A stretch of DNA of 64,000 nt from Pristiophorus japonicus (lineage: Eukaryota), in the NCBI RefSeq assembly GCF_044704955.1, contig NC_091977.1, forward strand, positions 11,160,001 to 11,224,000, written 5' to 3'. A program made the translations under genes and the position numbers. Below, piece by piece: positions 36,229 through 63,512 of this stretch. The notes under the pieces were generated by a model, which did no database searches, was not told where the DNA came from, and saw nothing but the letters and a program-made list of their open reading frames with translations. How positions within the stretch are numbered: the first letter of the stretch is position 1; each line of letters begins with the position of its first letter.

Positions 36229-36348
36229 GTACGGACTGGTTCAGTGATGGCACAGACTGGCTCAGTGATGGTACGGAGTGGTAAGTTATGGCACAGACTG
36301 GTTCAGTGATGGCACAGACTGGTTCAGTTATGGCACGGACTGGTTCAG
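36229..36348. repeat. Short 21-bp minisatellite (GGTTCAGTGATGGCACAGACT); also present at ~35692-35759 on the other side of the LTR
   Basis: About 5 visible copies to the right of the LTR and degenerate copies to the left. Confidence 0.7.
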
Positions 36349-36769
36349 GCTCTCTCCAGTGCTGATCCAGCTGATACCAGACTGGAAACTGGAGGAGTGG
36401 CAGCATTGGGCTTCAGGACCGGGCCTGGCTGTGATGTCCCCACAGCTGAATAGCCTGCAGGCACCCACTGCCTGGGCTCAGGCATGAGGAATGCCCAGTG
36501 AGGTCAGATCTGGGAAAGTGAATGGTGCTCGTAGAGCCTGCGCCCAGTACCAGACAGCAACACCCTGAGAGAAGGGATGAAAACATTTGGGAAAATATAG
36601 TCATTATAGATCTGAGAATCATTTCAACAAGGCAGGGTCTGTGTGCGGAGAGGGACGAGGGTTCAACAAACCAGCTGTCCAGCACCAAACAGCCTCCAAA
36701 GCAGAACAACCCGACTCAGAAAGGTGACAAGTGAATGGAATAGAAAACAGCAGAGGGCGCTCTTCTCTG

Positions 36770-38897: not shown

Positions 38898-39925
38898 TAA
38901 CTAACTGCTGCACCTTTCCTGGGAGTGTTTGATGGGACAGTGTAGAGAGTTTTACTCTGTATCTAACCCCGTGCGGTACCTGCCCTGGGAGTGTTTGATG
39001 GGACAGTGTAGAAAGAGTTTTACTCTGTATCTAACCCCGTGCGGTACCTGCCCTGGGAGTGTTTGATGGGACAGTGTAGAGAGAGCTTTACTCTGTATCT
39101 AACCCCATGCTGTACCTGCCCTGGGAATGTTTGATGGGACAGTGTAGAGGGAAATTTATTCTGTATCTAACTCGAGCTGTACCTGCCCTGGGAGTGTAGA
39201 GGGAGCTTTACTCTGTATTTACCCCCGTGCTGTACCTATCCTGGGAGTGTTTGATGGGACAGTGTAGAGGGAGCTTTACTCTGTATCTAAAACCAAGCTG
39301 TACCTGCCCTGGGAGTGTTTGATCGGACAGTGTAGAGGGAGCTTTACTCTGTCTCTAACCCGTGCTGTACCTGCCCTGGGAGTGTGTGGTGGGACAGTGT
39401 AGAGGGAGCTTTAGTCTGTATCTAACCTGTGCTGTACCTGCCCTGGGAGTGTTTGATGGGACAGTGTAGAGGGAGCTTTATTCTGTATTTACCCCCGTGC
39501 TGTACCTGCCCTGGGAGTGTTTGATGGGGCAGTGTACAGGGAGCTTTATTCTGTATTTACCCCCGTGCTGTACCTGCCCTGGGAGTGTTTGATGGGACAG
39601 TGTACAGGGAGCTTTATTCTGTACCTAACCCCCTGTACCTGGCCTGGGAGTGTTTGATGGGACAGTGTACAGGGAGCTTTATTCTGTACCTAACCCCCTG
39701 TACCTGCCCTGGGAGTGTGTGATCGGACAGTGTAGAGGGAGCTTTACCCTGTATCTAACCCGTGCTGTACCTGCCCTGGGAGTGTTTGATGGGGCAGTGT
39801 ACAGGGAGCTTTACTCTGTATCTAACCTGTGCTGTACCTGGCCTGGGAGTGTTTGATGGGACAGTGTAGCGGGAGCTTTACTCTGTATCCTACCCATGCT
39901 GTACCTGCCCTGGGAGTGTTTGAGA
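38898..39925. repeat. 67/68-bp tandem repeat, right block (same family as 36770-37344)
   Basis: About 15 more diverged copies resume immediately after the RTE tail. Confidence 0.95.
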
Positions 39926-41694: not shown

Positions 41695-41755
41695 ATGAAT
41701 TCTCTCTATGTTTGGCTTCCCACAGTCCTGCTGTCGGTCTCGGTGCAGGGTCACA
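41695..41755 (+). CDS. Siglec-15-like receptor exon 1: signal peptide MNSLYVWLPTVLLSVSVQGH
   Basis: ATG with purine at -3 (GGCGATG), a hydrophobic core, and a phase-1 donor A|GTAGGT matching the phase-1 acceptor of the V exon. Confidence 0.65.
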
Positions 41756-42699
41756 GTAGGTGCTTTCCATTACATTGCCCCTTCTTGATTACCTGATCTC
41801 CTCTCCTCCTTATTGTTCCCAACCCTGGTGGTGTCCAGCACGATGTGCCGTGCCCTTGGCCCCATGGTATCTCAACCTGAGAAAACATTTGGCTTGTCAA
41901 GCAACTATCAATGCAGAATAAGATTGCTGAACTGAAGCAGTACCAGCAGAGCTCGAGAAGCCCATAGAAGCTGAGGGGAACTTTCATGGTGTGAGCGGAG
42001 AAAGAGACCGCTGCAGTCATTGCCCGGTTTTAGGGGAACTCATTGCCCGTCAGATAACGGTGAGGCTAATGGCGCTCACTTCTTATTTCTGGTCCCGCAA
42101 CTTCAGGCGAGGGCCAGACGCGCGGTTATGCGCAGAAATCCAAAAGTTTCTGCTTCATGAAATCGGCATCTCGCAGCCTGGCTCACCGCTGAAATGCATT
42201 GAACGGCGAGGAGTTGCTGTATTTGCGCGGTCGATATGAACTAAACTTAGCGCAGGAAGTTAAGGCTTGTCCATTTCGGTCTAAATGCCCTTTTGACAAT
42301 GTGGTGAGTGTTACTTTGCTGCCAGTCAACCACTCTGGCACTGAAAATGAACTGTTACAAGTGTGGAGTCTCCTTCCTTCAGCTTTTAATTGTTGGTGAT
42401 TTTTAAAAAATGTACCTTTTCTTTTACTTTTCTTCTCTGTCTCTATTTTTTCTTCTCCCTTAATCCAATCTTTCTTCCCCTTTCTTAATTTGTCATTGAA
42501 TTCGCTCACACTTTCTTTCTCAGTCCTTACGCTGTAATGTTACAATCCTCTAATCTGATTGTTTAAGGAGATACACAATTGCTTGTCCGTTTGTTCTCGC
42601 TGTGATGTTATCAACTCGCATCTTCAGCAACTTGACACAGAAAAAATGTAAACGCCTAAGCATACAAGGGCAAGTCCAACTGACGGCAGGCACCATTAG

Positions 42700-43130
42700 A
42701 TACCAAAACTGCATTGAATTGCATCATATTTATAGCACAGAAACAGGCTATTTGGCTCAACTGGTCTATGCCGTTCCACAGGAGTCTCCTCCCACCCTAC
42801 TTAATCTAACCCTCTCAACATATCCTTCTATTCCTGTACATATCCAGCTTCCCCTTAAATGCATCTGTGCTATTCACCTCAACTACTCCATATGGTGGCG
42901 AGTTCCACATTCTCTGGGTAAAGAAGTTTCTCCTGATTTCTTCCTGATTTATTAGTGGCTATCTTATATTTCTGTCCCCTAGTTTTGGATTCCTCCATAT
43001 CTTCTCCAAGTCTATCCTATCGACCCTTTCATAATTTTGAAGACCTCTATCAGATCATCCCTCAGTCTTCTCTTTTCGAGAAGAAAGAGCCACAGCCTGT
43101 TCAGTCTTTCCTGGTAGTTACAACCCTCTC
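42700..43130 (-). mobile_element. Old degenerate CR1 3' fragment
   Basis: Remnant CR1 3'UTR and C-terminal motifs (acagaaacaggctatttgg..., ctctgggtaaagaagtttctcc). Confidence 0.5.
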
Positions 43131-43327
43131 ATTTTTCCCGCTGTATTTTAAATTTTTATCAATGAGTCTAGCTTTGCCAAAACATTTTATTCATTCTCTT
43201 TGCTGCGTAACCTGTCTTTGGGACTGGTGGTCTTGCTCACGAGGTGAGCTGCCTTCTCCACAGTCGTCTTGCCATTTTTGGAGGAGGCATTGTGAGCGAT
43301 CTCGGCACCGTAAGTCCTGTTGCTCAT

Positions 43328-45485
43328 CACTAGAATCATAGAACATTGCAACACAGAAGGAGGCCATTCAGCCCATCATGTCCGTGCTGGTTAAAAAAGA
43401 GTTACCCAGCCTAATTCCACTTTCCAGCTCTTGGTCCATAGCCCTATAGGTTATTGCACTTCACGTACGCAATGAAGTACTTTTTAAATGTGATGAGGGT
43501 TTCTGCCTCTACTACCCTTTCAGGCAGTGAGTTCCAGACCCCCTCCACCCTCTGGGTGAAGAATTGTTTCCTCATCTTCCCGCTAATCCTTCTAATAATT
43601 ACTTTAAATCTATGACCCCTGGTTGTTGACCCCTCTGCTAAGGGAAATAGGTCCTTCCTATCCACTCTATCCAGGCCCCTCATAATTTTATACACCTCAA
43701 TTAAATCTCCCCTCAGCCTCCTCTGTTCCAAGGAAAACAACCCCAGCCTATCCAATCTTTCCTCATAGCTAAAGTTTTCAAGTCTTAGCAACATTCTCGT
43801 AGACCTCCTCTGCACCCTCTCCAATGCAATCACATCCTTCCTGTAATGTGGTGACCAGAAATGTAGTACTCAAGCTGTGGCCTAACTAGTATTTTATGCA
43901 GTTTAAGCATAACCTCCCTGCTCTTGTATTCAATGCCTCGGCTAATAAAGGAAAGCATTCCATATTCCTTTTTAACTAATGTATCGACCTGTCCCCCTAC
44001 CTTTAAGGATCTATGGACATATACTCCAAGGTCCCTCTGTTCCTCCACATTGCTCAGTATCCTCCCATTTAATGTGTATTCCCTTGCCTTGTTGCCCCTC
44101 CCCAAATGCATTACCTCACACTTTTCCAGATTGAATTCCATTTGCTAATTTTCTGCCCAACTGACCAATTCATCGATATCTTCCTGCAGTCTCGAGCTTT
44201 CCTCACTTTCAACCACACCGCCAATTTATGTATCATCTGCAGATTTCTTTATCATGCCCCCTACATTTAAGTCTAAATCATTAATATATACTACAAAAAG
44301 TAAGGGACCAAGTTCTGAGCCCTGTGGAACCCCACTGGAAACAGCCTTCCAGTCACAAAAGCTCCCCTCATCCATTACCCTTTGCTTCCTGCCACTGAGC
44401 CAATTTTGAATCCAATTTGCCCCTCTCCCTTGTATCCCATGGCCTTTTACATTTTTGATCAGCCTACCATGTGGGACCTTGTCAAAAGTCTTGTTAAAAT
44501 CCATGAAAACTACATCAAAAGCACTGCCCTCATCGACCCTCCTGGTTATCTCCTCAGAAAATTCAATCAAGTTAGTCAGAAACGACCTTCCTTTAACAAA
44601 TCCATACTAACTGTCCTTGATTAACCTGTGTCTTTCAAAATGAAGGTATATACTATCGCTCAGAATTGATTCCAGTAATTTGCCCACCACAGAGGTTAAA
44701 CTAGCTGACCTGTAATTGCTTGGTTTATCTCTTCCTCCCTTTTTAAACAATGGTACAACATTAGCAGTTCTCCAATCCTCTGGCACAACACCTGTAGCCA
44801 GGAAGAATTAAAAAATGATGGTCAGATCCTCCGCAATTTCCTCCCTTGCTTCTTTTAGTAGCCTCGGATATATTTCATCCAGTCCTGGTGAATTATCTAC
44901 TTTCAAGAATGCTAAACCCCTTAAAAATTCGTCTCTTATTATGTTAATCCCATCCAATATTTCACCATCTTCCTCATGAACTTTAACGTCGGCATCGTGT
45001 CTTTTGTGAAGACAACTGCAAAGTATTCATCAAGTTCCTTATTCACATCCTCTGCATTCACACATAGATCACCATTTTAGTCCATAACAGGCCCTATTCT
45101 TTCCATAGTTATTCTCTTGCTCTTTATGTAATTGCAAAACATCTTTGGATTTTCTTTGATTCTACTTGCCAGTATTTTTTCAAGCCCTCTTTTTGCTTTC
45201 CTAATTTCCTTCTTAATTTTACCCCTGCACTTTCTAGGCTTTCTGCAGTATTGAGCTCATGATATCTGATATAGACTTCCCTTTTTAGCCTTATCTTACC
45301 CTATATGCACCTTGGATTCCAGGGGGCTCTACATTTAGCAGTTCTACCCTATTTCTTTGTGGGAACATGTTTACCCTGAACTCCAAGTACTTCCCTCTTG
45401 AATGCCACCCACTGTTCTGGCACTGATTTACCTTCAAGTAACTGTTTCCAGTCCACTTTTGCTAAATTACTTCTCAGCCAAGTAG
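43328..45485 (-). mobile_element. 5'-truncated degenerate CR1 LINE (different subfamily) in intron 1
   Basis: ORFs 43444..43833, 43830..44141 and 44226..44570 with FDKVPH, GVPQGS and ADDT motifs; AGAATCATAGAA tail. Confidence 0.9.
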
Positions 45486-46267
45486 AACATCCGGCTCCTT
45501 GATATTGGGGACTGAAAATTTCTTGAATTCCAAGGGCAGCATGTCTTAAATCTTCTTGTTGCTGCCATAACTGATGTTTGGCGTAAGAACCTGACCCTTA
45601 AAGCTCCTGCCAATCGCTCTGGGTTTGTGCCCGTTACGCACCATCTTCACCTTGTGTCAACAACTTTGGGTTTTCCGACTTCAATTCAGTTCAGTGGAAT
45701 ACAGTGGGGATCCCTTTGTATGAGCTGCTGTGATGTCTACGCAGCCAATCAAACAAATGGACAAACTTTAAAAGAAATGTAAAATGGTTTGGAGAAAAGT
45801 TTCATAAAAATTTAAACTTTTATTAAAATGGACCAATTTCACACTGTACAAAATTAAAATAAGCTTTCCAGGCCCTTAACCTTTGTTTAGCAGTGAATAC
45901 ATTGTTAAAACTCTTGGTGTAACAACCTTTAGTGGGGAATTTAACAGCGTGCTTACTGTGGGGGGGGGGGGGGGGGGGCGCGGTGGCAGGCGGAGGTGAG
46001 GAGGGGGAACAGCACAGCCTGTGTCAAAGCTGTCGATGACTGGCAGCAACTTCAGGATTTGCTCATGTGTCAACTCCCAAAGTTGCGGTCAGTTTCAAAG
46101 GCGGAATGACAGTGAATGCTGCTTGTTTACCCAACTGCAAATTCCGGGCAAGGGTTTAGAATATTAGGTCGTGCCTGACAAATCCAGTGGATCTCATTAA
46201 CGAATTCACTTATTCAGTATAGAAGTTGCATGAATTTCAGAAGGCACTGCTTAACGTTCCATATTGG

Positions 46268-49200
46268 AAACATAAGAACATAAGAAATAAGAGCAGGAGT
46301 AGGCCACCTGGCCCCTCGAGCCTGCTCCGCCATTTAATAAGATCGTAGCTGATCTGATTATGGACTCAGCTCCACTTCCCTGCCCGCTTCCCATAACTCT
46401 TTATGCCCTGGTCGCTCAAAAAATCTGTCTATCTCCGTCTTAAATATATTCAATGACCCAGCCTCCACAGCTCTTTGAGGCAGAGAATTGCACAGATTTA
46501 CAATCCTCTGAGAGAAGAAATTCCTCCTCCTCTCAGTTTTAAATGGGTGACCCCCCCATTTTAGTTTCCCCTATGAGTGGAAATATCCTCTCTGCATCCA
46601 CCTTGTCGAGCCCCCTCATTATCATATGTTTCGATAAGGTCACCTCTCATTCTTCTGAACTCCAATGTGTACAGGCCCAACCTACTCAACCTTTCTTCAT
46701 AAGTCAACCCCCTCATCTCCGGAATCAATCTAGTGAACTTTCTCTGAACAGTCTCCAATGCAAGTATATCCTTCCTTAAATACGGAGACCATAACTGTAC
46801 GCATACTCCAGGTGTGACCTCACCAATACCCTGTACAGTTGTAGCAGGACTTCTCTGCTTTTATACTCTATCCCCCTTGCAATAAAGGCCAACATTCCAT
46901 TTGCCTTCCTGATTACTTGCTCTGCCTTCATACTAACTTCTGGTGTTTCATGCACAAGGACCCCCAGGTCTCTCTGTACTGCAGCACTTTGCAATTTTTC
47001 TCCATTTAAATTATAATTTGCTTTTCTATTTTTTCTGCCAAAGTGGATAACCTCACTTTTTGCCACATTATACTCAATCTGCCAAATTTTTGCCCAATCA
47101 TTTAGCCTGTCTATATCCCTTTTCAGATTTAGTGTGTCCTCCTCACAATTTGCTTTCCCGCCCATTTTTGTATCTTCAGCAAACTTAGCTACATTAGAAC
47201 ATAAGAAATAGGAACAGAAGTAGGCCTTACGGCCCCTCGAACCTGCTCTGCCATTTAATACGATCATGGCTGACTCAGGTCCACTTCCCTGCCCGCTCCC
47301 CATAACCCCTTATTCCCTTATCGGTTAAGAAACTGTCTATCTCTGTCTTATTATTATTCAATGACCCAGCTTCCACAGCTCTCTGAGGCAGCAAAGTCCA
47401 CAGATTTACAATCCTCTGAGAGAAGAAATTCTTCCTCATCTCATTTTAAATGGGCGGCCCCTTATTCTAAGATTATGCCCCCAAGTTCTAGTCTCTCCTA
47501 TCAGTGGAAACATTCGCTCTGCATCCACCTTGTCGAGCCCCCCTCATAATCTTATACGTTTCGATATGATCACCTCTCATTCTTCTGAATTCCAATGAGT
47601 AGAGGCCCAACCTACTCAACCTTTCTTCGCAAGTCAACCCCCTCATCTCCGGAATTAACCAATGAACCTTCTCTGAACTTCCTCCAAAGCAAGTTTTGCC
47701 CTTCTTAAGTATGGAAACCAAAACTGTACGCAGTGTTCTAGGTGTGGCCTCACAAATACCCTGTATAACTGTAGCAAGACTTCCCTGCTTTTATACTCCA
47801 TTCCATTTGCAATAAAGGCCAAGATTCCATTGGCCTTTCTGATCACTTGCTGTACCTGCATACCAACCTTTTGTGTTTAATGCACCATGACCCCCAGGTC
47901 CCGCTGTACTGCAGCACTTTGCAATTTTTCTCCATTTAAATAATAACTTGCTCTTCGATTTTTTTCTGCCAAAGTGCATAACCTCAGACTTTCCAACATT
48001 ATACTCCATCTGCCAAATTTTTGCCCACTCACTTAGCCTGTCTATGTCCTTTTTCAGGGTTTTTGTGTTCTCCTTGCACATTGCTTTTCCTTCCATCTTT
48101 GTATCATCATCAAACTTGGCTAAATAACACTTGGTCCCTTCATCCAAGTCGTTAATATAGATTGTAAATAGTTGGGGTCCCAGCACTGATCTCTGAGGCA
48201 CCCCACTAGTTACTGATTGCCAACCCAAGAATGAACCATTTATCATGACTCTCTGTTTTTTGTTAGTTAGCCAATACCCTATCCATAATATATTACCCCC
48301 AACCCTGTGAACTTTTATCTTGTGCGGTAATCTTTTATGTGGCACCTTGTCAAATGCCTTCTGTAAGTCTAAATACACCACATCCACTGGTTCCCCTTTA
48401 TCCACCCTGTACATTACATCCTCAAAGAATTCCAGCAAATTTGTCAAACATGACTTCCCCTTCATAAATCCATGCTGACTCTGTGCCTGACCGAATTTTG
48501 CTTTTCCAAATGTCCTGCTACTGTTTCTTTAATAATGGACTCCAGCATTTTCCCAATGACAGATGTTAGGCCAACTGGCTAACTAGACTAGCTGGGACCT
48601 CCCCAGAATACAGGGATTTTGGTAAATTACAATCAATGCATCCACAATCCCTGCCATTACTTCTCTTAAGACCCTAGGATGCAAGCCATCAGGTCCATGG
48701 GATTTATGCACCCTTAATCCCATTATCTTACTGAGTACCAGCTCCTTTGGGATTGTGATTGTGTTAAGTTCCTCCACCCCTATAGCCCCTTGACTATCCA
48801 CTGTTGGCATATTTTTAACATCCTCTACTGATAAAAAATATTTATTCAGAGTTTCTGCCATCTCCATGTTCCCTATCACTAATTCCGCGGTCTGGTCCTC
48901 TAAGTGACCAATATTTACTTTAGCCATTCTTTTCTTTTTTATATACCTGTAGAAACTCTTACTATCTGTTTTTATATTTTGTGCTAGTTTACTTTCATAG
49001 TCTATCTTCCCTTTCTTGATCATTTTTTTAGTCATTCTTTGCTGGCTTTTAAAAGCTTCCCAATCTTCTGTCCTCGGTCCTTTCATCCAAGTCATCAATA
49101 TAGATTGAGGCCCCAGCACCGATCCCTGCGGCACCCCAATAGTCACTGTTTGCCAACTGGAAAATGACCCATTTATCCCGCCTCTCTGTTTTCTGTTAGT

Positions 49201-49540
49201 TAGCCAATCCTTTTTCCATGCTAACATATTACCCTCAACCCCGTGAACTTTTATCTTGTGCAATATCCTTTTATATGCCACCTTATTGAATGCCTTCTGG
49301 AAATCCAAATACACCACATCCACTGGTTTCCCCTTATCCACCCTGCTCGTTACATCCCCAAAGAACTCCAGCAAATTTGTCAAACATGATTTCCCTTTCA
49401 TAAAACCATGCTGACGCTGCTTGATTGAATTATGCTTTTCCAAATGTCCCACTACTGCTCCTTAATAATGGGCTCCAGCATTATCCCAACTACAGATGTT
49501 AGGCGAACTGGTCTATAGTCTCCTGCTTTCTGTCTGCCCC
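46268..49540 (-). mobile_element. CR1 fragment A (46268-47195 + ~49073-49540) interrupted by nested CR1 B
   Basis: 3' tail ACATAAGAACATAAG at 46268. RT sequence breaks at ...GCTACATT (47195) and resumes CTCGGTCCTTTCATCC (~49073). Confidence 0.8.
47196..49072 (-). mobile_element. Nested CR1 fragment B
   Basis: Has its own 3' tail (AGAACATAAGAAATAGG) at 47196, RT ORF 47791..48465, and pre-RT sequence up to EDWEAFKSQQR. Confidence 0.8.
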
Positions 49541-49814
49541 CATGACACATGAAACAGTTGGAAAAAGGCTGGCATGGTAATAAAGTAGAAAATGACGGTA
49601 AATAGACAAGACTCTGTAGTGAGGGCCCTGAGTGCTGTTCTTCAGACACCTCCTGGTCTCCTGACACAACCGAGAGATTTGAGAAAAGTCTTACGCACAT
49701 TATCAGCGCCAGAAAACGCAGGACCAAACCCACCCTTCAAACAAACAAAGCGACAAAACTTCAAAAACAACAGAGACCTGCAATCTAACCTAGGGAACAG
49801 ATGGTAGTTACAAA

Positions 49815-50560
49815 CCACCCGAACCCCTCGATTAGATTCCAAACTGTAACTCAGTCCCAGGTATCCATTATTGTATATATAGACCTCCCGAACCCCTCGA
49901 TTAGGTTCCAGCCTGTAACTCACTCCCAGGTATACATTATTGTATATATAGACCTCCCGAATCCCTCGATTAGGTTCCAGCCTGTAACTCACTCCCAGGT
50001 ATCCATTATTGTATATATAGACCTCCCGAACCCCTCGATTAGATTCCAGCCTGTAACTAACTCATTTCCAACTATCTATTATTGTATATATATAAACTCC
50101 CCGAACCCTGGATTAGATTCCAGCCTGTAATTCTCCCCCTGATATCCATTATTGTATATATAAATCTCCCGAACCCCTCGATTGGATTCCAGCCTGTAAC
50201 TCAGTCCCAGGTATCCATTATTGTATATATAGACCTCCCGAACCCCTCGATTAGGTTCCAGCCTGTAACTCACTCCCAGGTATACATTATTGTATAGATA
50301 GAACTCCCAAACCCCTCGATTAGGTTACAGCCTGTAACTCACTCCCAGGTATCCATTATTGTATATATAGACCTCCCGAACCCCTCGATTAGGTTCCAGC
50401 CTGTAACTAACTCATTTCCAACTATCTATTATTGTATATATATAAACCCCCCGAACCCTGGATTAGATTCCAGCCTGTAATTCTCCCCCTGATATCCATT
50501 ATTGTATATATAAATCTCCCGAACCCCTCGATTGGATTCCAGCCTGTATGTCACTCCACA
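49815..50560. repeat. 69-bp tandem repeat (~10-11 copies) ending just upstream of exon 2
   Basis: GAACCCCTCGATTAG... at 49821, 49890, 49959 and onward; a multi-unit block is duplicated (~50055 vs ~50400). Confidence 0.9.
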
Positions 50561-50714
50561 GTGTCCGATGCCCATGTATAAACCATCCCAATCTGACCGT
50601 GTGATGTTGTATCTGTTGTCACTATATAACTGACTCAGTATATTGTCTCGCAGTATGTTTTCCAAACACTGAGTCTGACCCAGTGCTGTGTTAATGTTGT
50701 CTCTCTCTCCACAG

Positions 50715-51101
50715 AGCTTTCTGCCAATGGCTGGACAATGACCATCGCGGATGCAGTGAGTGCTGAGGAAGGGAGGTCCGCTGTCTTGCCGTGCAGTTTC
50801 ACCCACCCACCCACTGATCGCCTGCTCACCGGCACTGTGAAATGGTTCAAAGTGCACTCATTGGAAGATATTTTTACCTGCACGTATTCTGGTCTGGGCC
50901 ATTCACAGGGCGAGCTGTGTGAGATTGTGAGGCAGCAGGAAGGCGGGAATCGATTCAGATTCGTGGGGAACCTCAGCAACAACGATGTTTCGATAATGAT
51001 GGAGCGGCTGAGCCAGGCGGACAATGCTGGTTATCGGTGTCGTGTGGAGCTCAATATTGGCAACTTTGGAACATCGAAAGGAACGGATCTGAGTGTGAGA
51101 G
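50715..51101 (+). CDS. Siglec-15-like receptor exon 2: V-set Ig domain 1 with essential Arg
   Basis: Acceptor CTCTCTCTCCACAG|, donor G|GTGAGG, 387 nt, phase 1-1. WTMTIADAVSAEEGRSAVLPCSFTHP...W...FTC...ELC...RFRFVGNLSNNDVSIMMERLSQADNAGYRCRVE matches Siglec-15 D1 as recalled (WSMQVPPEVSAEAGDAAVLPCTFTHP...FRC...ELC...RFRLLGN..YFCRVE). Confidence 0.92.
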
Positions 51102-51388
51102 GTGAGGATCAATGTTCAGGGGCTGTCGCTGCTCCGATAGCTCAGTGGGGAAAGGATCCACCTGGTTCGGTGAGTCTCGGGTTTAAACACCGTTCTTCGT
51201 TGATCTGAAGCAGGAGGCAGTAAGAAGGAAAGGGAGTAGAGACGAGCATTGAAAAGCTTTTAAACGTGTCTCCGATAGTGTGTTTCACATAGCCTCACTG
51301 GTTTGACGTGTTCAAGCTCGCTTCAGTGGTTCTGGGCTGGGGAGCACAAAAAACATCATGGGGGATTCTAGCTCCAAGATTTCTACCA

Positions 51389-51860
51389 AGCTTGATGGTA
51401 TCAGACCCATGTCCTCAGCCAATCGGGGCTCGGGAGGTACCAGCCTCACTACGACCTCAGCCAATGGGGGCTCGATGGTACCATCTATTGGCATTGGCTG
51501 AGGACATGGTGAGGCTGGTACCATCGAGCCCCCATTGGCTGAGGACATGGGGCTGATACCATTGAGCCCCCATTGGCTGAGGACATGGGGCTGGTACCAT
51601 CGAGCCCCCATTGGCTTAGGACATGGGTCTGGTACCATCGAGCCCCCATTGGCTAAGGTCGTGGTGAGGCTGGTACCTCCCGAGCCCCGATTGGCTGAGG
51701 ACATGGGTCTGATACCATCAAGCTCCCATTGGCTGAGGACATGGTGAGGCTGGTATCATCGAACGACCATTGGCTGAGGACATGGTGGGGTTGGTAAATA
51801 CCTAGCCCCCATTGGCTGAGGCCATGGTAGCGCTGGTACATTCCCAGCCCCCATTTGGTG
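51389..51860. repeat. ~38-41 bp CCAAT-containing minisatellite with a 95-bp inverted duplicate at its left end
   Basis: CCCCATTGGCTGAGGACATGG..CTGGTACCATCGAG units; 51389-51483 is the reverse complement of 51630-51724. Confidence 0.85.
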
Positions 51861-52344
51861 TGGCCATGCTGGGATGACTATCATTCCCTTTCCCTCCCCC
51901 CACCACCAAATAACCTGCCAACAGTCGCTGTTTAGGCTCGTCCATGAGGAAGGATTCCTTGGTCCAAGTTCCTAACAACAGTCGGCGACCATGTTAAGTA
52001 GGAAAGAAAATGGGTAACAAACATGCTCCATGGATGGTATAGCTAAGGATGAGGTTGAAAGAGACCCAGGAGGCTTGGGAGACTCGAATCTCAATAAGTC
52101 CAACCAATGCAGAGCACCAATCAACTAAACCAGTAGAGTGCTGAATAATGTTCTCTCTCTCTTCTTTTGGATCCACGGCCTCTTTAAGGGGCTGCGCGGC
52201 CCATTCACAGTTAATTTATATTGAAAAGGCCGGCCCCAGGCTGCGTGGGGACCGCACCTTACCGGAAACGTTGGTGTTGAACTACATAGCCAAAACAATA
52301 AGGTATGAGTCAGGAATTCATGACCAAACTGTACAGTTATCTGA

Positions 52345-52985
52345 AAGAAAGAGAGAACGTGCATTTATATAGCGTCTTTCTCCACCTCATGACATCCCAA
52401 AGCACTTTACAGTCAATAAAGTACTTTTGAAGTGTAGTCACTGCTGTAATGTAGGAAATACGGCAGACAATTTGCGCACAGCAAGCTCCCGCATACAGCA
52501 ATGTGATAATGACCAGATAATCTGTTTTAGTGATATTTCTTGAAAGCTAAGTATTGGCCCAGGACACGGGGAGAACTCCCCAACTCTTGTTTGAATAATG
52601 TTTGTTTGTCAGCCAGTGGTTCGGTTGTTAGCACTCTCGCCTCTGGATCAGAAGGTTGTGACTACAAGTTCCACTTTTGAGCACATAATGCAGGCTGAAA
52701 CTCCCAGTGCAGTACTGAGGGAGTGCTGCACTGTCGGAGGTGCAGTTTTTCCATATGAGACGCTTAACTGAGGCCCCATCTACACTCTAAGGTGGACCTA
52801 TGGCACTATATCCTATGACTTAACATTTCATCCGAACGATGGCAGCTCCGACAGTGCAGCACTCCCTCAGCACTGCACTGGGAGTGTCAGCCTGGATTTT
52901 GTGCTCAAGTCTTTGAAGAGGGACTTGAACCCGCAACCTTCTGACTCAGAGATGAGTGTGCTACCCACTGAGCCACAGCTGATAC
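52345..52985. mobile_element. tRNA-derived (Deu/SacSINE-like) SINEs: a minus-strand copy (~52345-52590 + ~52820-52985) with a plus-strand head (~52610-52790) inserted
   Basis: A/B-box-like head and core CTCCCAGTGCAGTACTGAGGGAGTGCTGCACTGTCGGAGG appear in both orientations; an L2-type tail lies on the minus strand. Confidence 0.7.
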
Positions 52986-53528
52986 ATATGATCAGACCTC
53001 ACCTTGAGTGCTGGCCATTGAGAGAGAAGAGAGCTATTCAAGTACTGGAGCTGGTGGGGAGGAGAGTCACTTGGCGGATCCCTACCCCAGTGTCAGGGTC
53101 TGAGTCCTGAGGAAAGACTGGTGAGATTTGGAATTTTCAGTCTGCAGAGGAGGAGACTGAGAGGTGACCAGGTGACCATGTAGAGGTTTGAAAGATCTTA
53201 AATGACGTAGAAAAATAAATCCGGAGTACTTACTTAAATCAAACTGTGCAAGTAGCACCAGCATCACGTGTTGAAAGCAGTGAAATGCAATGTTAGAACT
53301 GATATCGGGAGGTTCTCCTTCACGCAGAGAGTGAATGGGGGGCGGCATTTTGATCAGGGTGTGTGCTGTAGGGGAATATAAACAGCCTGTTTGGGGCAGC
53401 CCTGGAGAAATATGTCAGTGCAGTTTTTAAGCATTCATTCTATTGTAAAGTTGAAAATTACAAAACAAATTGAATCTAAAAATGATGCAGGTTGATCTGA
53501 CACATTCTGATGTCTGACCTTTCCTCAG

Positions 53529-53876
53529 CTGCTAGTGGAAATGACTCAGTGGTGAGAGGGACCGAGGGAGCTTCGGTTACATTGCCCTGTCTGTTCACAC
53601 CCAGCGACGACACCAACCCAACTGTTACATGGATGAGGAAGGAGCCCTACCAACACTTAGTCACATTTAGAGCCCAATCAAATGGGTCTTGGACAACTGT
53701 AAATGGTGGAAATCGGTACGAGCTCATCGGGAACCCAAAGGAGGGAAACGCTTCAACCAGGATAAAGCAGCTGAGCGTGAAGGACAACCACACTTACCTG
53801 TGTCTGGTGGAGCACAAGCCACGGAACAATTACATAAATCTGAGCCAGACTGAGACATGTCTGCAGCTCGTACATG
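53529..53876 (+). CDS. Siglec-15-like receptor exon 3: second V-set Ig domain (Arg absent)
   Basis: Acceptor CTTTCCTCAG|, donor G|GTAAGA, 348 nt, phase 1-1. EGASVTLPCLF...VTW...RYELIGNPKEGNAS.RIKQLSVKDNHTYLCLVE has V-set spacing and a DxxxYxC motif. Confidence 0.9.
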
Positions 53877-54094
53877 GTAAGAAACCATTCCTACATTCTC
53901 CAGTGTAAAGAGGTTTTCTGTGCACTTTTGATGTTTATTGTATTTCATGTAACTTGCACGTGCTGATTCTGTTAGATGCATTCTGACATTCAGTATTGAA
54001 AGACAATGAACTGAGTGTTAAGTGTGTGTCATTATACCTTCACCAAGGGAATGGGCAGGTTTGTGAACAGACTTCACAGGACCAGAAGCTTCAC

Positions 54095-55330
54095 AAGAAC
54101 ATGAGAATTAGGAGTAGGAGTAGGCCATGCGGCCCCTCGAGCCTGCTCCGACATTCAACAAGATCATTGGTGATCTCTGACCTCAACTCCCCGATCTCCA
54201 TTTCCCTTGATTCCCCTCGAGTCCAAAAATCTATCGATCTCAGCATTGAATATATTCAGAGACTCAGCATCCACAGCCTTCTGGGGCAAAGAATTCCAAA
54301 GGTTCACAACCCTCTGAGTGAAGAAATTCCTCCTCATCTCGGTCTTAAATGACCGACCCCTTATCCTGAGAATGTGCCCCCCGAGTTCTAAAGTCTTCAA
54401 CCAGGGGAAACAATCTCTCCGCATCTATGCTGTCAATCTCCCTCAGAATCTTCTATATTTCAATGAGATCACCTCTCATTCTTCTATACCCCAGAGAGTA
54501 GAGGCCCAATCTACTCAATCTCTCCTCATATTTCAACTTCCCCCTTCATCAGGTTAACAAGGCCATAAAAATGCTAACCAAGCGCTGGGGTTCATTTCTA
54601 GAAACACAGAAACATAGAAAATCAGTGCAGAAGTAGGCCATTCATCCCTTCAAGCCTGCACCACCATTCAATAAGATCATGGCTGATCATCACCTCAGTA
54701 CCCCTTTCTTGCTTTCTCTCCATACCCCTTGATCCCTTTAGCTGTAAGGGCCATATCTAACTCCCTCTTGAATATATCCAATGAACTGGCATCAACAACT
54801 CTCTGCAGTAGGGAATTCAACAGGTTAACAACTCTGAGTGAAGAAGTTTCTCCTCATCTCAGTCCTAAATGGCTTACCCGTTATCCGTAGACTATGTCCC
54901 CTGGTTCTGGACTTCCCCAACATCGGGAACATTGTTCCTGCATCGAACCTGTCCAGTCCTGTCAGAATTTTATATGTTTCTATGAGATCCCCTTTCATCC
55001 TTCTAAACTCTAGTCGATCCAGTCTCTCCTCATATGTCAGTCCTGCCATCCCGGGAATCAGTCTGGTGAACCTTCACTGCACTCCCTCAATAGCAAGCAC
55101 GTCCTTCCTCAGAATAGAATTGAAAAATAGTGACGTGTGTTAAACTTGTATCGAACATTGGTTAGACCCTACTTGGAGTACTGTGCACATTCTAGTCTCC
55201 ATATTATAAAAAGGCTGTAGAGGCACTGGAAAAGATGCAAAAAAGATTTACAAGGTTGATAAGAACATCAGAACATAAGAAATAGGAGCAGGAGTAGGCC
55301 TTTTGGCCACGCAAGCCTGCTCCGCCTTTC
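54095..55330. mobile_element. Cluster of CR1 fragments (minus 54095-54550, 54602-55112, 55262-55330; older plus fragment ~54555-54601/55113-55260)
   Basis: ORFs 54164..54424 and 54825..55049 (RNFFTQRVVNLWNSLP; YEERLDRL) and several CR1 tails. Confidence 0.8.
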
Positions 55331-56280
55331 CTCTCCCAGTATCTAGAGTACAACGGCAGTAGCTATGGGGATTGGCCGGGGGTGAAATCACATCGCCATC
55401 TTAGACACGGGAGTGGACCCCGAAGCACAAGGACTCCAGGTAATGGCACGCGATTATAGATACTGCGCATGCCCTCATTGCTTATTAGAGCAGTGTGTTT
55501 AGTCTGCCATCATTTTTGTGGTCAATATTGTTTCTGTCATAATGGAGGGCTCTTCAGTTCAACCTTGCTGTAGGTGGGGGACCATGATGTCGGTCTATTC
55601 CTGCTTGCTGGGTCAGTATTCATGCTAATTTTAACCTCTGTTGAGTCTGGACTGTGCCGGGCTGATAAAGAGTTCATCATTTTGAGAATAGCTTTGCACA
55701 GACATAGCCTTGAAATCAGATAGCATAATAAGGAACAATGATTCATACATGGGTTACTGGAAATAACATGCAAACGGCCAGCTGCACAGCCAAACATGAA
55801 ACCCCTGTATGTTTTCAAAGACCATGCAGTGTAACTGGTTGGTTTCAAAAGCTCTCACTCAGGGGTGGCCAATTATTTGGGCTGGAGGGCCACTTACTGC
55901 ACACGCAGTGTCTCTCCCAGCAGCAGGGGCTGGTGAGTGGCCTGCGGGGGTATCCTCGCAGATTGGTGTGTGGCCGCGCACCTTAAGGGGAACATTGGTG
56001 TGCGACCCTCGACAGCCCATCAAAACTTGTTAAGTGGCCTTCCAGCCCAAATAACTGCCCACCCCTGGGTTAGGTGAAGTAGGGTAGGAAGAGGCTCGTG
56101 TGGAGCACACACTCAGCGTGGGCCAAATGGCCTGTTTGTTCATTCAATGTAACCCTGCCACATGTCCCGTTGGAGAAGCAGTGGAACCTAAAGGCCCTCT
56201 GGGAACCAGAGCCTTCCACTTCTTTCCACGACAGACCCAAAAACAACTCCACACATCCCCCTGCACATAGTAAAGGAAAG

Positions 56281-56843
56281 AAAGAGCTTTCATTGATATA
56301 GCACCTCTCACATCCTCAGGATGTCCCAACATAGCCAATGAATTACTTTCGAAGTGCAGTAACATTTGTTATGGAGCCAAACGCAGCTGACAATTTCTGC
56401 TGGTTGAGGGATGAATGTTGGCCAGGACACCAGGAGAATTCCCTGCTCTTCTTCGACATGGGATCTTTTGCATCCACCCGACCAGGGAGTCGGGGGCTCG
56501 GTTTAACGTTCCATCCGAAAGACGGCACTTCTGGTAACGTAGCAGTCCCATTCAGTGCTGTATTCGAAGGTTCAGTCTCGATTACATGCTGAAATTATGT
56601 AATGGGGCTGATGGTGGCAAGAATGCCAACAACTGAGCCTGGTCGGGTGGATGCAAAAGATCTCATGTCGAAGGAGAGCAGGGAATTCTCCGGGTGTCCT
56701 GGCCAACATTCATCCCTCAACCAGCAGAAATTGTCAGCTGCGATTTGCTCCATAACAAATGTTACTGCACTTCGAAAGTAATTCATTGGCTATGTTGAGA
56801 CATCCTGAGGATGTAAGAGGTGCTATATCAATGAAAGCTCTTT
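56281..56843. repeat. SINE-derived long inverted repeat: 206-bp arms (56281-56486 / 56638-56843), 151-bp spacer
   Basis: Arms are reverse complements with few mismatches; mirrored ORFs 56338..56592(+) and 56595..56786(-) both start MNYFRSAVTFVME. Confidence 0.92.
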
Positions 56844-56917
56844 GGGGAGTGGCTCAAGGGTGAACACGTCCTGGGTGTGAGACATTGCATATTAACAGTG
56901 TTCGTGCTATTTTACAG

Positions 56918-57028
56918 AGAAGCCCTCTGACCCCACCAACAAAATGACGCCGATCATTGCACTGCTGCCGTTGCTGCTCATCCTCTTCATCCTCTTGATC
57001 CTCTTGATCATATGCAGGAAGAAAGGAG
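56918..57028 (+). CDS. Siglec-15-like receptor exon 4: stalk + transmembrane (EKPSDPTNKMTPIIALLPLLLILFILLILLIICRKKG)
   Basis: Acceptor TATTTTACAG|, donor G|GTGGGT, 111 nt, phase 1-1. A ~21-residue hydrophobic stretch followed by a CRKK stop-transfer sequence. Confidence 0.88.
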
Positions 57029-57299
57029 GTGGGTTCTGGATAGGATGAGGCCAAATAAAACAATACGTTTCTGTGTTTAAAGCAACAACATATGATTACC
57101 CTGGATTATGTTTCCCTCGACAATATTCTCCTCTTCCCCTCCTTTTCTGAAAGAACTGACTTTTCTTTTTGGGGTGTGTGGCCTGTTCCACAAGCAGCGG
57201 GCACCCTCTGGCACCTCAGCCAATTGGTTCTTTTTCAAGAGGAGCTTTTATGGCATCAGTCGGCTTTCAAGTGTCAGGGATTTCACAGCCAAGCTCACT

Positions 57300-57970
57300 C
57301 TATAGAACTGACATGGACCAAACTCCTTCCCATTCACTGTATAAAATCTCAATGGACTAAACCTCTTCCCATTCTTCCCCCACTGTATAGAATCCCAATA
57401 GGCCAAGCCTTTCCTACTCACTACCACTGTGTAGAATCCCAATGGGCCAAGCCTTTCCCACTCACTCCCATGCCTTGATCAGCCATGATCTTATTGAATG
57501 GCGGTGAAGGCTCGAAGGGCCGAATGGCCTACTCCTGCACCTATTTTCTATGTTTCTATGTTTCCATGTTTCACTCCCATTGTATAGAATCCCAATGGGC
57601 CAAGCCTTTGCCACTCACTCCCATTGTAGAGAATCCCAATGGGCCAAGCCTTTGCCACTCACTCCCATTGTAGAGAATCCCAATGGGCCAAGCCTTTGCC
57701 ACTCACTCCCATTGTAGAGAATCCCAATGGGCCAAGCCTTTGCCACTCACTCCCATTGTATAGAATCCCAATGGGCCAAGCCTTTGCCACTCACTCCCAT
57801 TGTAGAGAATCCCAATGGGCCATGCCTTTCTCACTCACTCCCATTGTAGAGAATCCCAATGGGCAAAGCCTTTGCCACTCACTCCCATTGTAGAGAATCC
57901 CAATGGGCCAAGCCTTTGCCACTCACTCCCATTGTAGAGAATCCCAATGGGCCATGCCTTTCTCACTCAA
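57300..57970. repeat. 44-bp tandem repeat interrupted by a CR1 3' tail (~57470-57570, plus strand)
   Basis: TGTAGAGAATCCCAATGGGCCAAGCCTTTGCCACTCACTCCCAT at 57625, 57669 and onward; TTTCTATG tail at ~57545-57570. Confidence 0.88.
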
Positions 57971-58079
57971 GCCCTCTTTGCACTGGCCGCTAATATTAGA
58001 GGGGCGAAGTGCCTTGTGCACGCTGCAGGCCTCAAACTCCCAAGTCCAATAATGTGGATCCCGATGATCTTGAAAATGT

Positions 58080-58416
58080 AAAGTTCTCATCCTTATGTTC
58101 AGATCCCTCGGTGGCCTCGCCCCTCCCTATCTCTGTAACCTCTCCAACTTTCCAAGATATCTGCGTTCCTCCATTTCTGGCCTCAGCCTCCAGCTGCCTA
58201 GGCCCCCAAGCTCTGGAACTCCCTCCCTAAACCTCTCCGCCTCGCTACCTCTCTCCTCCTTTCAGACACTCCTTAAAACCTACCTCTTTGACCAGGCTTT
58301 TGGTCACCTGTCCTAACATGGCTCCGTCAAATTTTTTCTGATGACGCTCCTGTGAAGCACCTTGGGACGTTTTATTACATTGATGGCGCTATATAATTAG
58401 AAGTTGTTGTTGTTGT
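58080..58416 (+). mobile_element. L2-type LINE 3' end
   Basis: CTCTGGAACTCCCTCCCT...CTTAAAACCTACCTCTTTGACC...GTGAAGCACCTTGGGACG...(GTT)n tail. Confidence 0.65.
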
Positions 58417-58704
58417 GGTGCTTAAGTGTATCCAGTGCCCATCATCGGATTAAAGGCAAGTGACATTGATAAAACAAGGAAAGCCTTCGCAACGTTGAGA
58501 CATACGGCCTCGGGTAAGAACAACAACCTTACAGTCTCATGACTAAGAACATTGTGTAATGAGTCTTATCGTAAGTGCTATCAGTGTAGCAGTCATCTTG
58601 CCTAAGTTCCCATAGGGTGACAGTTGCAACATCCTAAGACACGTTCATGTGCGTGAATGACACCTTGGAAAAAGATCTATGTAAACAAGTTGGCTTTTCT
58701 GGGA

Positions 58705-59185
58705 AAATTAGGAGAATGGTTCCAGGTATACGGCTCTTCAGTTATGTGGAGAGATTGGAGAAGCTGGGGTTTTTCTCCTTGGAGCAGGGGAGGTTAAGGG
58801 GAGATTTAACAGAGGCTTTCAAAATCATGAAGGGTTTTGATAGAGTGACTAAGGAGAAACTGTTAGAACTGGCAGAAGGGTCGCTAACCAGAGGGCACAG
58901 ACTTAAGGTAATTGACAAAAGAGCCAGAGGTGACCTGAGGAGAATTTGTTTTACGCAGCAAGTTGCTGTGATCGGAACGCGCTGCCTGAAAGACGGTGGG
59001 AGCAGATTCGATAATAACTTTCGAAAGGGAATTGGATAAATACTTGAAAAGAAAACATTTACAGGTTTATGGGGAAAGAGCAGAAGAGTGGGACTAATAT
59101 CGGATCGATCTTTCAAAGGGCCGGCACAGGCACGATGGGCCAAATGGCCTCCTTCTGTGCGGTATAATCCTCTGATTCTTCTGAA
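58705..59185 (+). mobile_element. CR1 3' fragment
   Basis: RMVPG..FSYVERLEKLGFFSLEQGRLRGDL..TRGHRLK, followed by 3'UTR. Confidence 0.8.
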
Positions 59186-59689
59186 CTGAACAATGAAAGA
59201 TGAACAAGTGTTTTCAGAGGAAGGGGAGTGAGCAAGAACAATACAAAAGCACAGACTAAGAGAGAAGTAGTAGAGGATCGATTTCTGTGGCAGTAAGAGT
59301 AACATTGCTTTTCACTCGGTGTTGGATGGGGTTCCTGCTGCTGGTTTGGTCATTGAGTGATATTGGACTGGGCTATGTTGGGCAGTCTTCAGCAAGAGAA
59401 TTTAGGTACCGTATATAAAACCTGAGACGTTTCCCAATCTAATTCTGCCTTGTGTATATATTGATGAAAGGGGATGGTTTCGCCTGTTACACTTCCACTA
59501 ATAGAGGCTACATATTACAGTTGTCAATACAATATTATCGACACGCTAATGGCAATGTGGAGGAATTAGCGTGCATTTCACACCCACTCCATTGTATAGA
59601 ATTCTAATGCGCTATGTTTTTCACATTCACTTTTGGTACCTAGAATGATATGTACATTGGCTATGGAAGGAGATTAAATTGGTAGGTAG

Positions 59690-60226
59690 AGAGTACATGG
59701 GCTGTGGGAGGGGATTAAATGGATGGGTAGTCAGTGATAGGGGAGCGTGTACATGGGCTGTGGGAGGGGATTAAATAGGTGGGTAGTGTCAGTGATAGTG
59801 GAGTGTGTACATGGGCTGTGGGAGGGGATTAAATGGGTGGGTAGTGTCTGTGATAGGGGAGTGTGTACATGGTCTGTGGGAGGGGATTAAATGGGTGGGC
59901 AGGGTCAGTGATAGGGGAGTGTGTACATGGGCTATGGGAGGGGATTAAATGGGTGGGTAGGGTCAGTGATAGGGGAGTGTGTACATGGGCTGTGGGAGGG
60001 GATTAAATGGATGGGTAGTGTCAGTGATAGGGGAGTGTATACATGGTCTGTGGGAGGGGATTAAATGGGTGGGTAGTGTCAGTGATAGGGGAGTGTGTAC
60101 ATGGGCTGTGGGAGGGGATTAAATGGGTGGGTAGTGTCAGTGATAGGGGACTGTGTACATGGGCTGTGGGAGGGGATTAAATGGGTGGGCATAGTCAGTG
60201 ATAGGGGAGTGTGTACATGGGCTGTG
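59690..60226. repeat. 56-58 bp G-rich tandem repeat (~9.5 copies) with G3 quadruplex motifs on the sense strand
   Basis: TACATGGGCTGTGGGAGGGGATTAAATGGGTGGGTAGTGTCAGTGATAGGGGAGTGTG units. Confidence 0.9.
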
Positions 60227-60321
60227 GCATTGATTACCATATTTTTCCTGCTCTTTCCAATGCACCCGGTGAGGATTTCAGTTATTAAACTAAATATTTA
60301 CTAATCGTTTTATCTCTTCAG

Positions 60322-60361
60322 GGTGTTCGTGGCTAATGGGGTGCACCAGATGTACAAAAAG
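60322..60361 (+). CDS. Siglec-15-like receptor exon 5 (cytoplasmic, GCSWLMGCTRCTKR)
   Basis: Branch point TACTAAT (~60299-60305), acceptor TCTCTTCAG|, donor AG|GTAGGA. 40 nt, phase 1 in and phase 2 out, which fits exon 6. Confidence 0.6.
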
Positions 60362-60904
60362 GTAGGATAGTTGGCTATGAATACATGCGGGGTCACCGAG
60401 TTGCTCTGCTCCAGGGCTGCATTGACCACCCCTTGCTCACAGGTCGAGTGCAGCATGCTGGCGATGTTTAGCTGCTCACATGGTTTATCTGCTGCTCCCT
60501 GGTCACTCGCTGCGGGGAAGTGATGTAAATAGCCCCCGGGGTGAATCACAGGTTCATTGTTACTGAGTAAATATTGCCGGTTGCCAGACGGGTTGTAAAT
60601 CCCTGACTCCAGATCCACCAGCAAGCTTCCTTCGACAAATTACCCCGCACTTCACCGAGTGAGCAATGGCCGTCTTGCTCCTTGTTAATACTTTGGGCAC
60701 TTTGAGATGTAATGAAAGCTTGCTGAATGCTCACTTGGAATGAATGAGTATAATATGGAAGTATCTTGCTTTATGTTAATCGTCTTGGATCCCATTATTT
60801 TCCCCGACCACCCCCCCCCCCCCCCCCCCCCCAAGGAGCTGAATTTCCATTGGGAGGGGAGAGGGCCCCCTGATCGTCCACCATTTTCCAGGGTTAGTCT
60901 GTGC

Positions 60905-61226
60905 GTTGACAAGCTATTCAACTGTTCATTGGCAAGCTATTCAACTGTGGTAATCCCAGACTGTGCATTGTCAAGCTATTCAACTGTGGTAATCCCAGAC
61001 TGTGCATTGGCAAGCTATTCAACTGTGGTAATCCCAGACTGTGCATTGGCAAGCTATTCAACTGTGGTAATCCCAGACTGTGCATTGGCAAGCTATTCAA
61101 CTGTGGTAATCCCACACTGTGCATTGTCAAGCTATTCAACTGTGGTAATCCCAGACTGTGCATTGGCAAGCTATTCAACTGTGGTAAGCCTAGACTGCAT
61201 TGTCAAGCTATTCAACTGTGGTAAGC
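60905..61226. repeat. 39-bp tandem repeat (~7.5 copies)
   Basis: CAAGCTATTCAACTGTGGTAATCCCAGACTGTGCATTGG units. Confidence 0.92.
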
Positions 61227-61418
61227 CTGAGCCCACATCCGCACATGTGCTCTTTCTAGTCGGGGTCGATCGATTAACGCTGTTAATTGCCCTCGGAAAT
61301 CTGTTCGCTGTATAACGTGAGCAGGAAGTTGATATGTACACATACTTTCTCACATTACTGTCACCTTGGATTATGCCGTTCGCTTTCTCTGAATATTTCT
61401 GTTCCGTGTTTTGTTTAG

Positions 61419-61480
61419 GGATGACCCGGGTCCATCCAGCATCGCTGGGACCAATCCTTGCCGCCGGCTGTCAGCACCAG
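61419..61480 (+). CDS. Siglec-15-like receptor exon 6 (cytoplasmic, DDPGPSSIAGTNPCRRLSAP)
   Basis: Long pyrimidine tract and TTTAG| acceptor, donor CAG|GTAACG, 62 nt, phase 2-1 with an open frame. Confidence 0.6.
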
Positions 61481-62532: not shown

Positions 62533-62747
62533 ACCCCACGTGTGGAGTCGCCCAAATGTTACACCTCGATTCACTTCAGTTTTTACAGAGGGTGAGAGTG
62601 GTTCTGCAGGGACAGGGTAAAGAACCACTCCTGGAGGGAAACCTTCAAAACTGCGCTGTGCTTAAAAAGGTTCACAGGGTTTTTGGATGCACCAAAATCG
62701 AAGATATTGGAGGCACTAATTGTTTTACAAAAATATCACCATTCCTT

Positions 62748-63512
62748 TTACTATCCCACCCAGTCTAATCCCACTCTCCCGCTCTCTCCCTGTATCCTTT
62801 AATATCCCACCCAGTCTAATCCCACTCTCCCCTCACTCCCCATACCCTTTAATATCCCAACCAGTCTAATCCCACTCTCCTGCTCTCTCCCTGTATCCTT
62901 TAATATCCCACCCAGTCTAATCCCACTCTCCCCTCACTCCCCGTACCCTTCCATATCCCACCCAGTCTAATCCCACTCTCCCTCACTCCCCATACCCTTT
63001 AATATCCCACCCAGCCTAATCCCACTCTTGCCTCACTCCCCGTACCCTTTAATATCCCATCCAGTCTAATCCCTCCCTCCTGCTCACTCCCCATAACCCT
63101 TTACTATCCCACCCAGTCTAATCCCACTCTTGCCTCACTCCCCGTACACTTTAATATCCCATCCAGTCTAATCCCTCGCTTCTGCTCACTCCCCATACCC
63201 TTTAATATCCCACCCAGTCTAATCCCACTCTCCCTCACTCCCCATACCCTTTAATATCCCACCCTGTCTAATCCCACTCTTGCCTCACTCCCCGTACCCT
63301 TTAATATCCCACCCAGTCTAATCCCTCCCTCCTGCTCACTCCCCGTACCCTTTAATATCCCACCCAGTCTAATCCCACTCTTGCCTCACTCCCCGTACCC
63401 TTTAATATCCTACCTAGTCTAATCCCTCCCTCCTGCTCACTCCCCATACCTAATATCCCACCCAGTCTAATCCCACTCTCCCCCTCACTCCCCACACCCT
63501 TTAATACCCCAC
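62748..63512. repeat. ~50-51 bp C-rich tandem repeat (~15 copies)
   Basis: CCCACCCAGTCTAATCCCACTCTCCCCTCACTCCCCATACCCTTTAATAT units. Confidence 0.9.

Follow-up and report, generated by a model that had tools for sequence, protein, structure and literature searches.

A two-V-domain Siglec-15-like receptor gene of the sawshark Pristiophorus japonicus, likely an inhibitory member of a paired family in elasmobranchs

The 64,000-nucleotide stretch of the Pristiophorus japonicus genome analysed here (hereafter the window; NCBI RefSeq assembly GCF_044704955.1, contig NC_091977.1, positions 11,160,001 to 11,224,000 of the forward strand) contains a single gene plus repeats, and six exons of this gene, all on the plus strand, show it to be a real and intact gene of the sawshark that encodes a type I membrane receptor with two domains. 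The outer one (D1) resembles the V-set domain of Siglec-15, a receptor that is conserved, activating and DAP12-coupled, and that keeps its transmembrane (TM) lysine and its arginine from fish to mammals (PMC7226832). Sharks and rays, by contrast, carry the same V-set in dozens of inhibitory and activating genes, and we consider it likely that the gene described here is an inhibitory member (i.e., one with an ITIM, an immunoreceptor tyrosine-based inhibitory motif) of an elasmobranch-wide, multigene, paired family of Siglec-15-like V-V receptors without a C2 domain.

A preliminary description, made from the letters of the window alone, had proposed six exons with GT-AG borders, matching phases and a stop-free frame, all of which was borne out. 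Each exon has a GT donor, in exons 2 to 6 a pyrimidine tract precedes the AG acceptor, the lengths are 61, 387, 348, 111, 40 and 62 nt (1009 nt in total), the phases are 1, 1, 1, 1, 2 and 1, and translation exon by exon meets no stop codon within the frame of any of the six. The exons were translated and searched singly and never joined, whole-protein analyses being run on the public protein P0171. In order, they encode a signal peptide, two domains of 128 and 115 residues, a stalk with an uncharged TM helix that closes with RKKG, and a pair of short cytoplasmic pieces. Exon 1 (41695..41755) carries the start codon and the signal peptide MNSLYVWLPTVLLSVSVQGH (read as MNSLYVWLPTVLLSVSVQG from the exon translation), followed by a GT donor in phase 1, and is probably the true first coding exon. 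Exon 2 (50715..51101) encodes D1, a V-set of Siglec-15 type with four cysteines and the arginine of YRCRVE; exon 3 (53529..53876) encodes D2, a second V-set with two cysteines, four N-x-S/T sequons and YLCLVE, i.e., leucine at the position of the D1 arginine. A short stalk, the TM helix, which is uncharged, and the stop-transfer signal RKKG come from exon 4 (56918..57028), a cysteine-rich juxtamembrane cytoplasmic segment (GCSWLMGCTRCTK), conserved in the ITIM-type genes of other sharks, from exon 5 (60322..60361), and a further cytoplasmic segment from exon 6 (61419..61480), whose GT donor leads to exons past position 64000. The open model, its signal peptide and its TM helix agree with the type I membrane protein of about 336 amino acids or more that had been described, with the amendment that the model is 3′-incomplete, its last exons lying outside the window.

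The same gene can be recognized in public protein sets. The D1 exon as query found shark proteins named Siglec-15 plus one P. japonicus protein, and a full-length relative as query retrieved P0171, a P. japonicus protein of 385 amino acids called "cell surface A33 antigen-like isoform X3". The translations of exons 2 to 6 are exact substrings of both P0171 and P0229 (isoform X1, also of P. japonicus), and at the four junctions the codons (A, E, G and R) agree with both proteins. Public annotation therefore reached the junctions 2-3-4-5-6 independently, and the gene is not hidden, as had been thought, but filed under a misleading name.

P0171 and P0229 lack exon 1 at their N-termini, yet it matches the N-termini of the sawshark paralogues P0185 and P0189 with 95% and 90% identity and that of P0004 of the bamboo shark Chiloscyllium with 71%. 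Since it encodes a typical signal peptide and an N-terminus conserved in relatives, 41695–41755 is probably the real first coding exon, and the preliminary description probably gives a better 5′ end than the public models do. Isoforms X1 and X3 begin instead at an alternative first coding exon of 34 nt (36247..36280, plus strand; MAQTGSVMVRS, strong donor G/GTAAGT), which lacks a signal peptide and lies inside a 21-bp minisatellite, where MAQTGS is encoded three times at 36247–36330. For want of a signal peptide, this N-terminus of the public models probably reflects either an annotation artefact or an exon of the 5′ untranslated region. At the other end, P0171 continues beyond exon 6 with two CTYAxI motifs and a C-terminal canonical ITIM, VIYAAV. 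Peptide and tblastn searches for the ITIM-tail exons in the 64-kb window gave noise only; the tail of P0171 is not encoded there, so the gene extends past position 64000.

Pfam assigns both large exons to the V-set (D1 2.3e-11, D2 7.6e-17). Among solved structures the best match to D1 is human Siglec-15 (PDB 7zoz, E 4.6e-15), followed at a distance by TIM-3 (6e-6) and CD33 (1.2e-5). The four-cysteine pattern read in the translation (LPC/FTC/ELC/YRC) pairs completely with that of 7zoz (LPC, F.C, ELC, Y.C), and YRCRVE aligns with YFCRVE, which holds the essential sialic-acid arginine on the F strand (human R143). In a search of 1.84 billion representatives 184 proteins match D1 at E ≤ 0.001, and 12 of the 14 named non-elasmobranch matches that were looked up are Siglec-15/SIG15 (from mammals, birds, frog, teleosts, gar and lungfish). 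Judged from these alignments, D1 is a Siglec-15-type V-set, as first described. D2 too has a Siglec-15 V domain as its top solved match (3.3e-8), roughly level with TIM-2, and it has two cysteines only and leucine in place of the arginine. It is a V-set, so the single C2 domain that follows the V-set of Siglec-15 is replaced by a second V-set, just as had been proposed.

The same holds for the TM segment: exon 4, as its translation confirms, has no charged residue in the helix, so the TM lysine of Siglec-15 is absent, and the public isoforms use the same exon. The chance that the real transcript takes a C2 or a lysine-bearing TM exon from elsewhere was addressed for the window and the public isoforms. 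No C2 exon was found in the 64-kb window by tblastn with five C2 domains, and no lysine-TM exon by peptide and tblastn searches, both giving noise only, whilst isoforms X1 and X3 keep the uncharged TM. An AlphaFold2 model of P0171, built on a 40-sequence family alignment, predicts both domains confidently as beta-sandwiches, followed by a helical TM segment at 262–291 and a disordered tail. The best Foldseek matches of the whole model are JAML and V-V pairs of the single-chain antibody fragment (scFv) type, not Siglec-15; this supports a tandem V-V shape for the predicted protein and is uninformative on its family.

Protein searches found about 100 relatives in more than 20 species of elasmobranchs (sharks, rays and skates), under automatic names as diverse as Siglec-15, Siglec-10, Siglec-12, pIgR-like, JAML, A33-like, MPZL3 and HAVCR1-like. 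A motif census separates two types. The ITIM type (n = 30) has an uncharged TM and a tail of about 100 residues ending in V[IT]YA[AES][VI], and the V1+V2 layout in 19 of 30 members; the lysine type (n = 22, plus two that the regular expression missed) has a TM of the form ..ILCIPLG[VL]K[LT]L.., a tail of 10–50 residues, and V1+V2 in 21 of 22. The lysine TM is akin to those of Siglec-15 in lungfish (..LILCSALGIKLLLF..) and in mammals (..LGALGLKVLLLV..); in Siglec-15 this lysine stands for coupling to DAP12/DAP10, just as R143 is its essential sialic-acid arginine (PMC7226832). The window gene bears the marks of the ITIM type, i.e., the uncharged TM and a RKKGGCSW-type juxtamembrane segment within the window and, via P0171, the V.YA.V ITIM, and more than 10 species have orthologous forms with ends like that of P0171. 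This favours the inhibitory half of the earlier proposal of a decoy or inhibitory arm and not the decoy half, as the tail is not merely devoid of signals. Nor is the receptor, described before as lineage-specific, confined to the sawshark: the V-V family extends over sharks, rays and skates, and a chimaera too has the V1-V2 pair.

The proposed paired nature of the family, on the other hand, held up. Two lysine-type genes of the sawshark itself, P0231 and P0006, are 85% identical to the window gene in D1 and 89–90% in D2, with a TM reading ...CIPLGVKLLAL..., a 12-residue tail, and glycine in place of the D1 arginine. A putative activating counterpart with a near-identical ectodomain and a charged TM, the very combination expected of paired receptors, therefore exists in the same genome. 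The fate of the arginine across the family differs between the two types: it is present in 24 of 25 ITIM-type and 12 of 21 lysine-type D1 domains (Fisher p = 0.003, a value that covers related proteins, some perhaps isoforms, and is to be taken as a lead and not as a result). Put the other way, it is lost in 9 of 21 lysine-TM and in 1 of 25 ITIM forms, with H, C, Y, G, K and S among the replacements. That the replacements differ suggests repeated, independent loss in the lysine-TM (activating) forms, and the retention in ITIM types suggests a constraint on that site in the inhibitory ones.

Maximum-likelihood trees of single V domains, which included no non-Siglec outgroup and are therefore unrooted, place the D1 domains of the family in one clade (100/99, starred) and the D2 domains in another (100/99, starred), with D1 and D2 of the window inside, whilst the Siglec-15 V domains of bony vertebrates form a separate clade (96/88, starred). 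Within the family, the ITIM gene and the lysine gene of one species are mutual nearest relatives for both domains in all six species sampled (sawshark, Heterodontus, Hemiscyllium, Scyliorhinus torazame, Hypanus and Leucoraja), with a star on all but one of the 12 pairings. Because the two members of a pair differ in sequence, they are separate genes and not isoforms. This fits paired receptors with ectodomains in concerted evolution, through gene conversion or recurrent duplication, and with signalling halves that are kept distinct.

Cartilaginous fish have a second subfamily, of V-V-C2 layout and usually named Siglec-15, in sharks, rays and the chimaera Callorhinchus, with its own conserved lysine TM (..MLCLIPLVKFLLLL..) and some ITIM members. 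All chondrichthyan V2-type domains, D2 of the window included, form one clade (100/99, starred), in which the V2 clades of the V-V and V-V-C2 subfamilies are sisters (100/99, starred). As the V1-V2 pair is found in chimaera and in elasmobranchs alike, it would be older than the split of holocephalans and elasmobranchs, and since both bony-vertebrate Siglec-15 and the sister subfamily have a C2 domain, the V-V subfamily of the window gene appears to have lost it. The V-V-C2 subfamily is likelier to be the closer one to true Siglec-15, and so the better orthologue candidate. Its members P0259, P0262, P0263, P0265–P0267, P0270 and P0034 have a highly conserved lysine TM (..MLCLIPL[VI]KFLLLLITGIILF..), and the lysine-type ones, where readable, mostly have leucine for the V1 arginine (Y.CLV[DE]), the arginine being retained in P0034 of Callorhinchus. 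Siglec-15-like proteins with several V domains also occur beyond cartilaginous fish (P0008, P0021, P0022, P0023 and P0031), i.e., a lungfish form with seven V domains and a C2, a lungfish V-V-C2 with a TM lysine, a gar V-V, an ITIM-bearing newt V-V and a characiform V-V-C2; the V copies within each of these proteins are mutually nearest, so that they look like independent duplications.

How an inhibitory receptor of this build might work can be sketched from its parts (i.e., signal peptide, D1 with the arginine, D2 without it, uncharged TM, and a tail of about 100 residues ending in the ITIM, outside the window). The ligand of D1, most probably a sialoglycan, would be bound at the arginine site; tyrosines of the tail would then be phosphorylated, and the ITIM would recruit SHP-type phosphatases and so dampen activation. 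The lysine-TM twins, with a near-identical ectodomain and a short tail, would signal through an adaptor of the DAP12/DAP10 type. A broader reading, which we favour by a modest margin over its negation, is that the Siglec-15 lineage of cartilaginous fish became a multigene paired system, with V-V ectodomains homogenised within species and activating copies that repeatedly lose the arginine, and that this would be a much older, independent analogue of the CD33-related Siglecs of mammals, with the window gene as an inhibitory member competent for sialic acid.

Several points weigh against assigning the window gene an inhibitory role in this way. P0171 and P0229 are automatic predictions, both of which begin at the exon without a signal peptide; the ITIM, with its exons outside the window, is seen only in P0171, and isoform X1 (P0229) ends differently, without it. 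No RNA run was listed for 50715–57028, and expression is presumed, as is the use of exon 1 as the first coding exon. As for the ligand, sialic acid is presumed from the conserved arginine, and Siglec-15 cloned from zebrafish was a poor binder of the glycans on which it was tested (PMC7226832). The last observation speaks at the same time for the strongest alternative, according to which the architecture is as described, the ligand is a protein, lipid or pathogen molecule (cf. TIM, CD300, pIgR and JAML), and the likeness to Siglecs is ancestral only. This would accord with the TIM and pIgR V domains that D2, and more weakly D1, also match, with JAML and scFv-like pairs as the best folds for the whole model, and with the replacement of the arginine in many family members, especially the activating ones. 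Conservation of that residue in nearly every ITIM-type D1 across sharks and rays speaks against it, however, and we regard it as unlikely, if worth keeping in mind.

That the gene is instead an unexpressed or decaying copy in a multigene family of fast turnover, intact in looks but functionless, seems improbable. The model is without RNA support, the public versions start at a minisatellite-derived exon, and the locus is rich in repeats and retroelement fragments, all of which such decay could explain; but the seven coding pieces in the window are all open with canonical splice sites, every conserved cysteine, tryptophan and arginine position is retained, and the signal-peptide exon is intact and conserved. 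Least probable of all, and hardly credible, is that the gene is the sawshark orthologue of Siglec-15 itself, activating and DAP12-coupled by way of an overlooked C2 or lysine-TM exon, for although Siglec-15 comes closest to D1 of the solved structures and of the named proteins, the window holds no such exon, the public isoforms share the uncharged TM, the tail in P0171 bears an ITIM, and the separate V-V-C2 subfamily with its conserved lysine TM fits that role better. This reading is already largely refuted. The gene is not classed as Siglec-15, for it fails on three defining features (the C2 domain, the TM lysine and the activating tail).

If this split of shark and ray genes into inhibitory and activating forms, with ectodomains homogenised within species, holds, then cartilaginous fish evolved paired receptors of the sialic-acid type within their Siglec-15 lineage, an origin separate from that of the CD33-related Siglecs in mammals. 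This would provide comparative immunology with a second, ancient test case for why such pairs evolve (i.e., mimicry of the host's own sialic acids by pathogens, and counter-receptors on the activating side from which the arginine is lost). No paper on a shark Siglec-15-like or paired receptor family was found in the literature searched, which did not extend to reviews of Siglec evolution in subscription journals. In databases the family is obscured by automatic names (A33 antigen-like, MPZL3, Siglec-10, Siglec-12, pIgR-like and JAML among them), and the public models of the window gene appear to omit its true signal-peptide exon.

The rest of the window is repetitive. Just upstream of the receptor locus lies a 28.5-kb satellite (3930–32432; 21-bp unit, about 1364 copies, 81% matches) of marked strand asymmetry, with a GC skew of about +0.85 and an AT skew of about −0.53. 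Two tandem arrays of one related 67–68-bp unit (36768–37344 and 38918–39923; 8.6 and about 11 copies) sit between the two candidate first exons (36247–36280 and 41695–41755), and six intronic minisatellites with periods of 38–69 bp follow at 49814–50557, 51492–51873, 57571–57969, 59693–60227, 60921–61224 and 62739–63512, one of which stops about 160 bp upstream of the D1 exon. On the minus strand, upstream of the gene and in intron 1, there are fragments of reverse-transcriptase-like open reading frames of long interspersed nuclear elements (33497–34900, 43444–44570 and 46776–49733), and two adjacent open reading frames of 166 and 148 amino acids at 2605–3551, also on the minus strand, look like retroelement ORF1-type proteins.

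In comparison with known systems, the window receptor has D1 in common with Siglec-15 (7zoz; mammals, birds, frogs, teleosts and lungfish), down to the V-set, the four cysteines and the arginine of Y.CRVE, and its lysine-TM paralogues have the ..LG.K.LL.. TM motif of Siglec-15 as well. The two differ in what follows, for Siglec-15 has a C2 domain and a DAP12-recruiting lysine where the window gene has a second V-set, an uncharged TM and a long ITIM tail, and in number, Siglec-15 being a single conserved gene and the family of the window gene comprising many genes per genome. The chondrichthyan V-V-C2 receptors (e.g., Heterodontus P0266, Callorhinchus P0034 and Pristis P0228) have V1 and V2 types in common with it and likewise both lysine-TM and ITIM members, but they keep the C2 domain and have a distinct TM (..MLCLIPLVKFLLLL..).

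A parallel in organisation is found in the CD33-related pairs of primates, Siglec-5/14 and Siglec-11/16, which likewise consist of ITIM and charged-TM genes with near-identical ectodomains grouping by species, a likeness that two papers ascribe to gene conversion (PMC5701461, PMC4042635). More frequent loss of the arginine on the activating side counts among the points of likeness. The family described here differs from these pairs in having a Siglec-15-type V-set, a V-V and not a V-C2n layout, a lysine and not an arginine in the activating TM, and cartilaginous fish and not mammals as its carriers. JAML (3mj6), the top Foldseek match of the whole model, also has two tandem V-sets on a TM, but at 18% identity only and without the Siglec-type pattern of cysteines and arginine, so that the likeness is architectural and not familial. 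The MDIRs of skate and zebrafish, finally, are multigene activating and inhibitory V-set receptors of cartilaginous fish, with V domains described as like those of CD300, TREM and pIgR (PMC3031540). For D1 of the present family, Siglec-15 surpasses pIgR and TIM by at least nine orders of magnitude.

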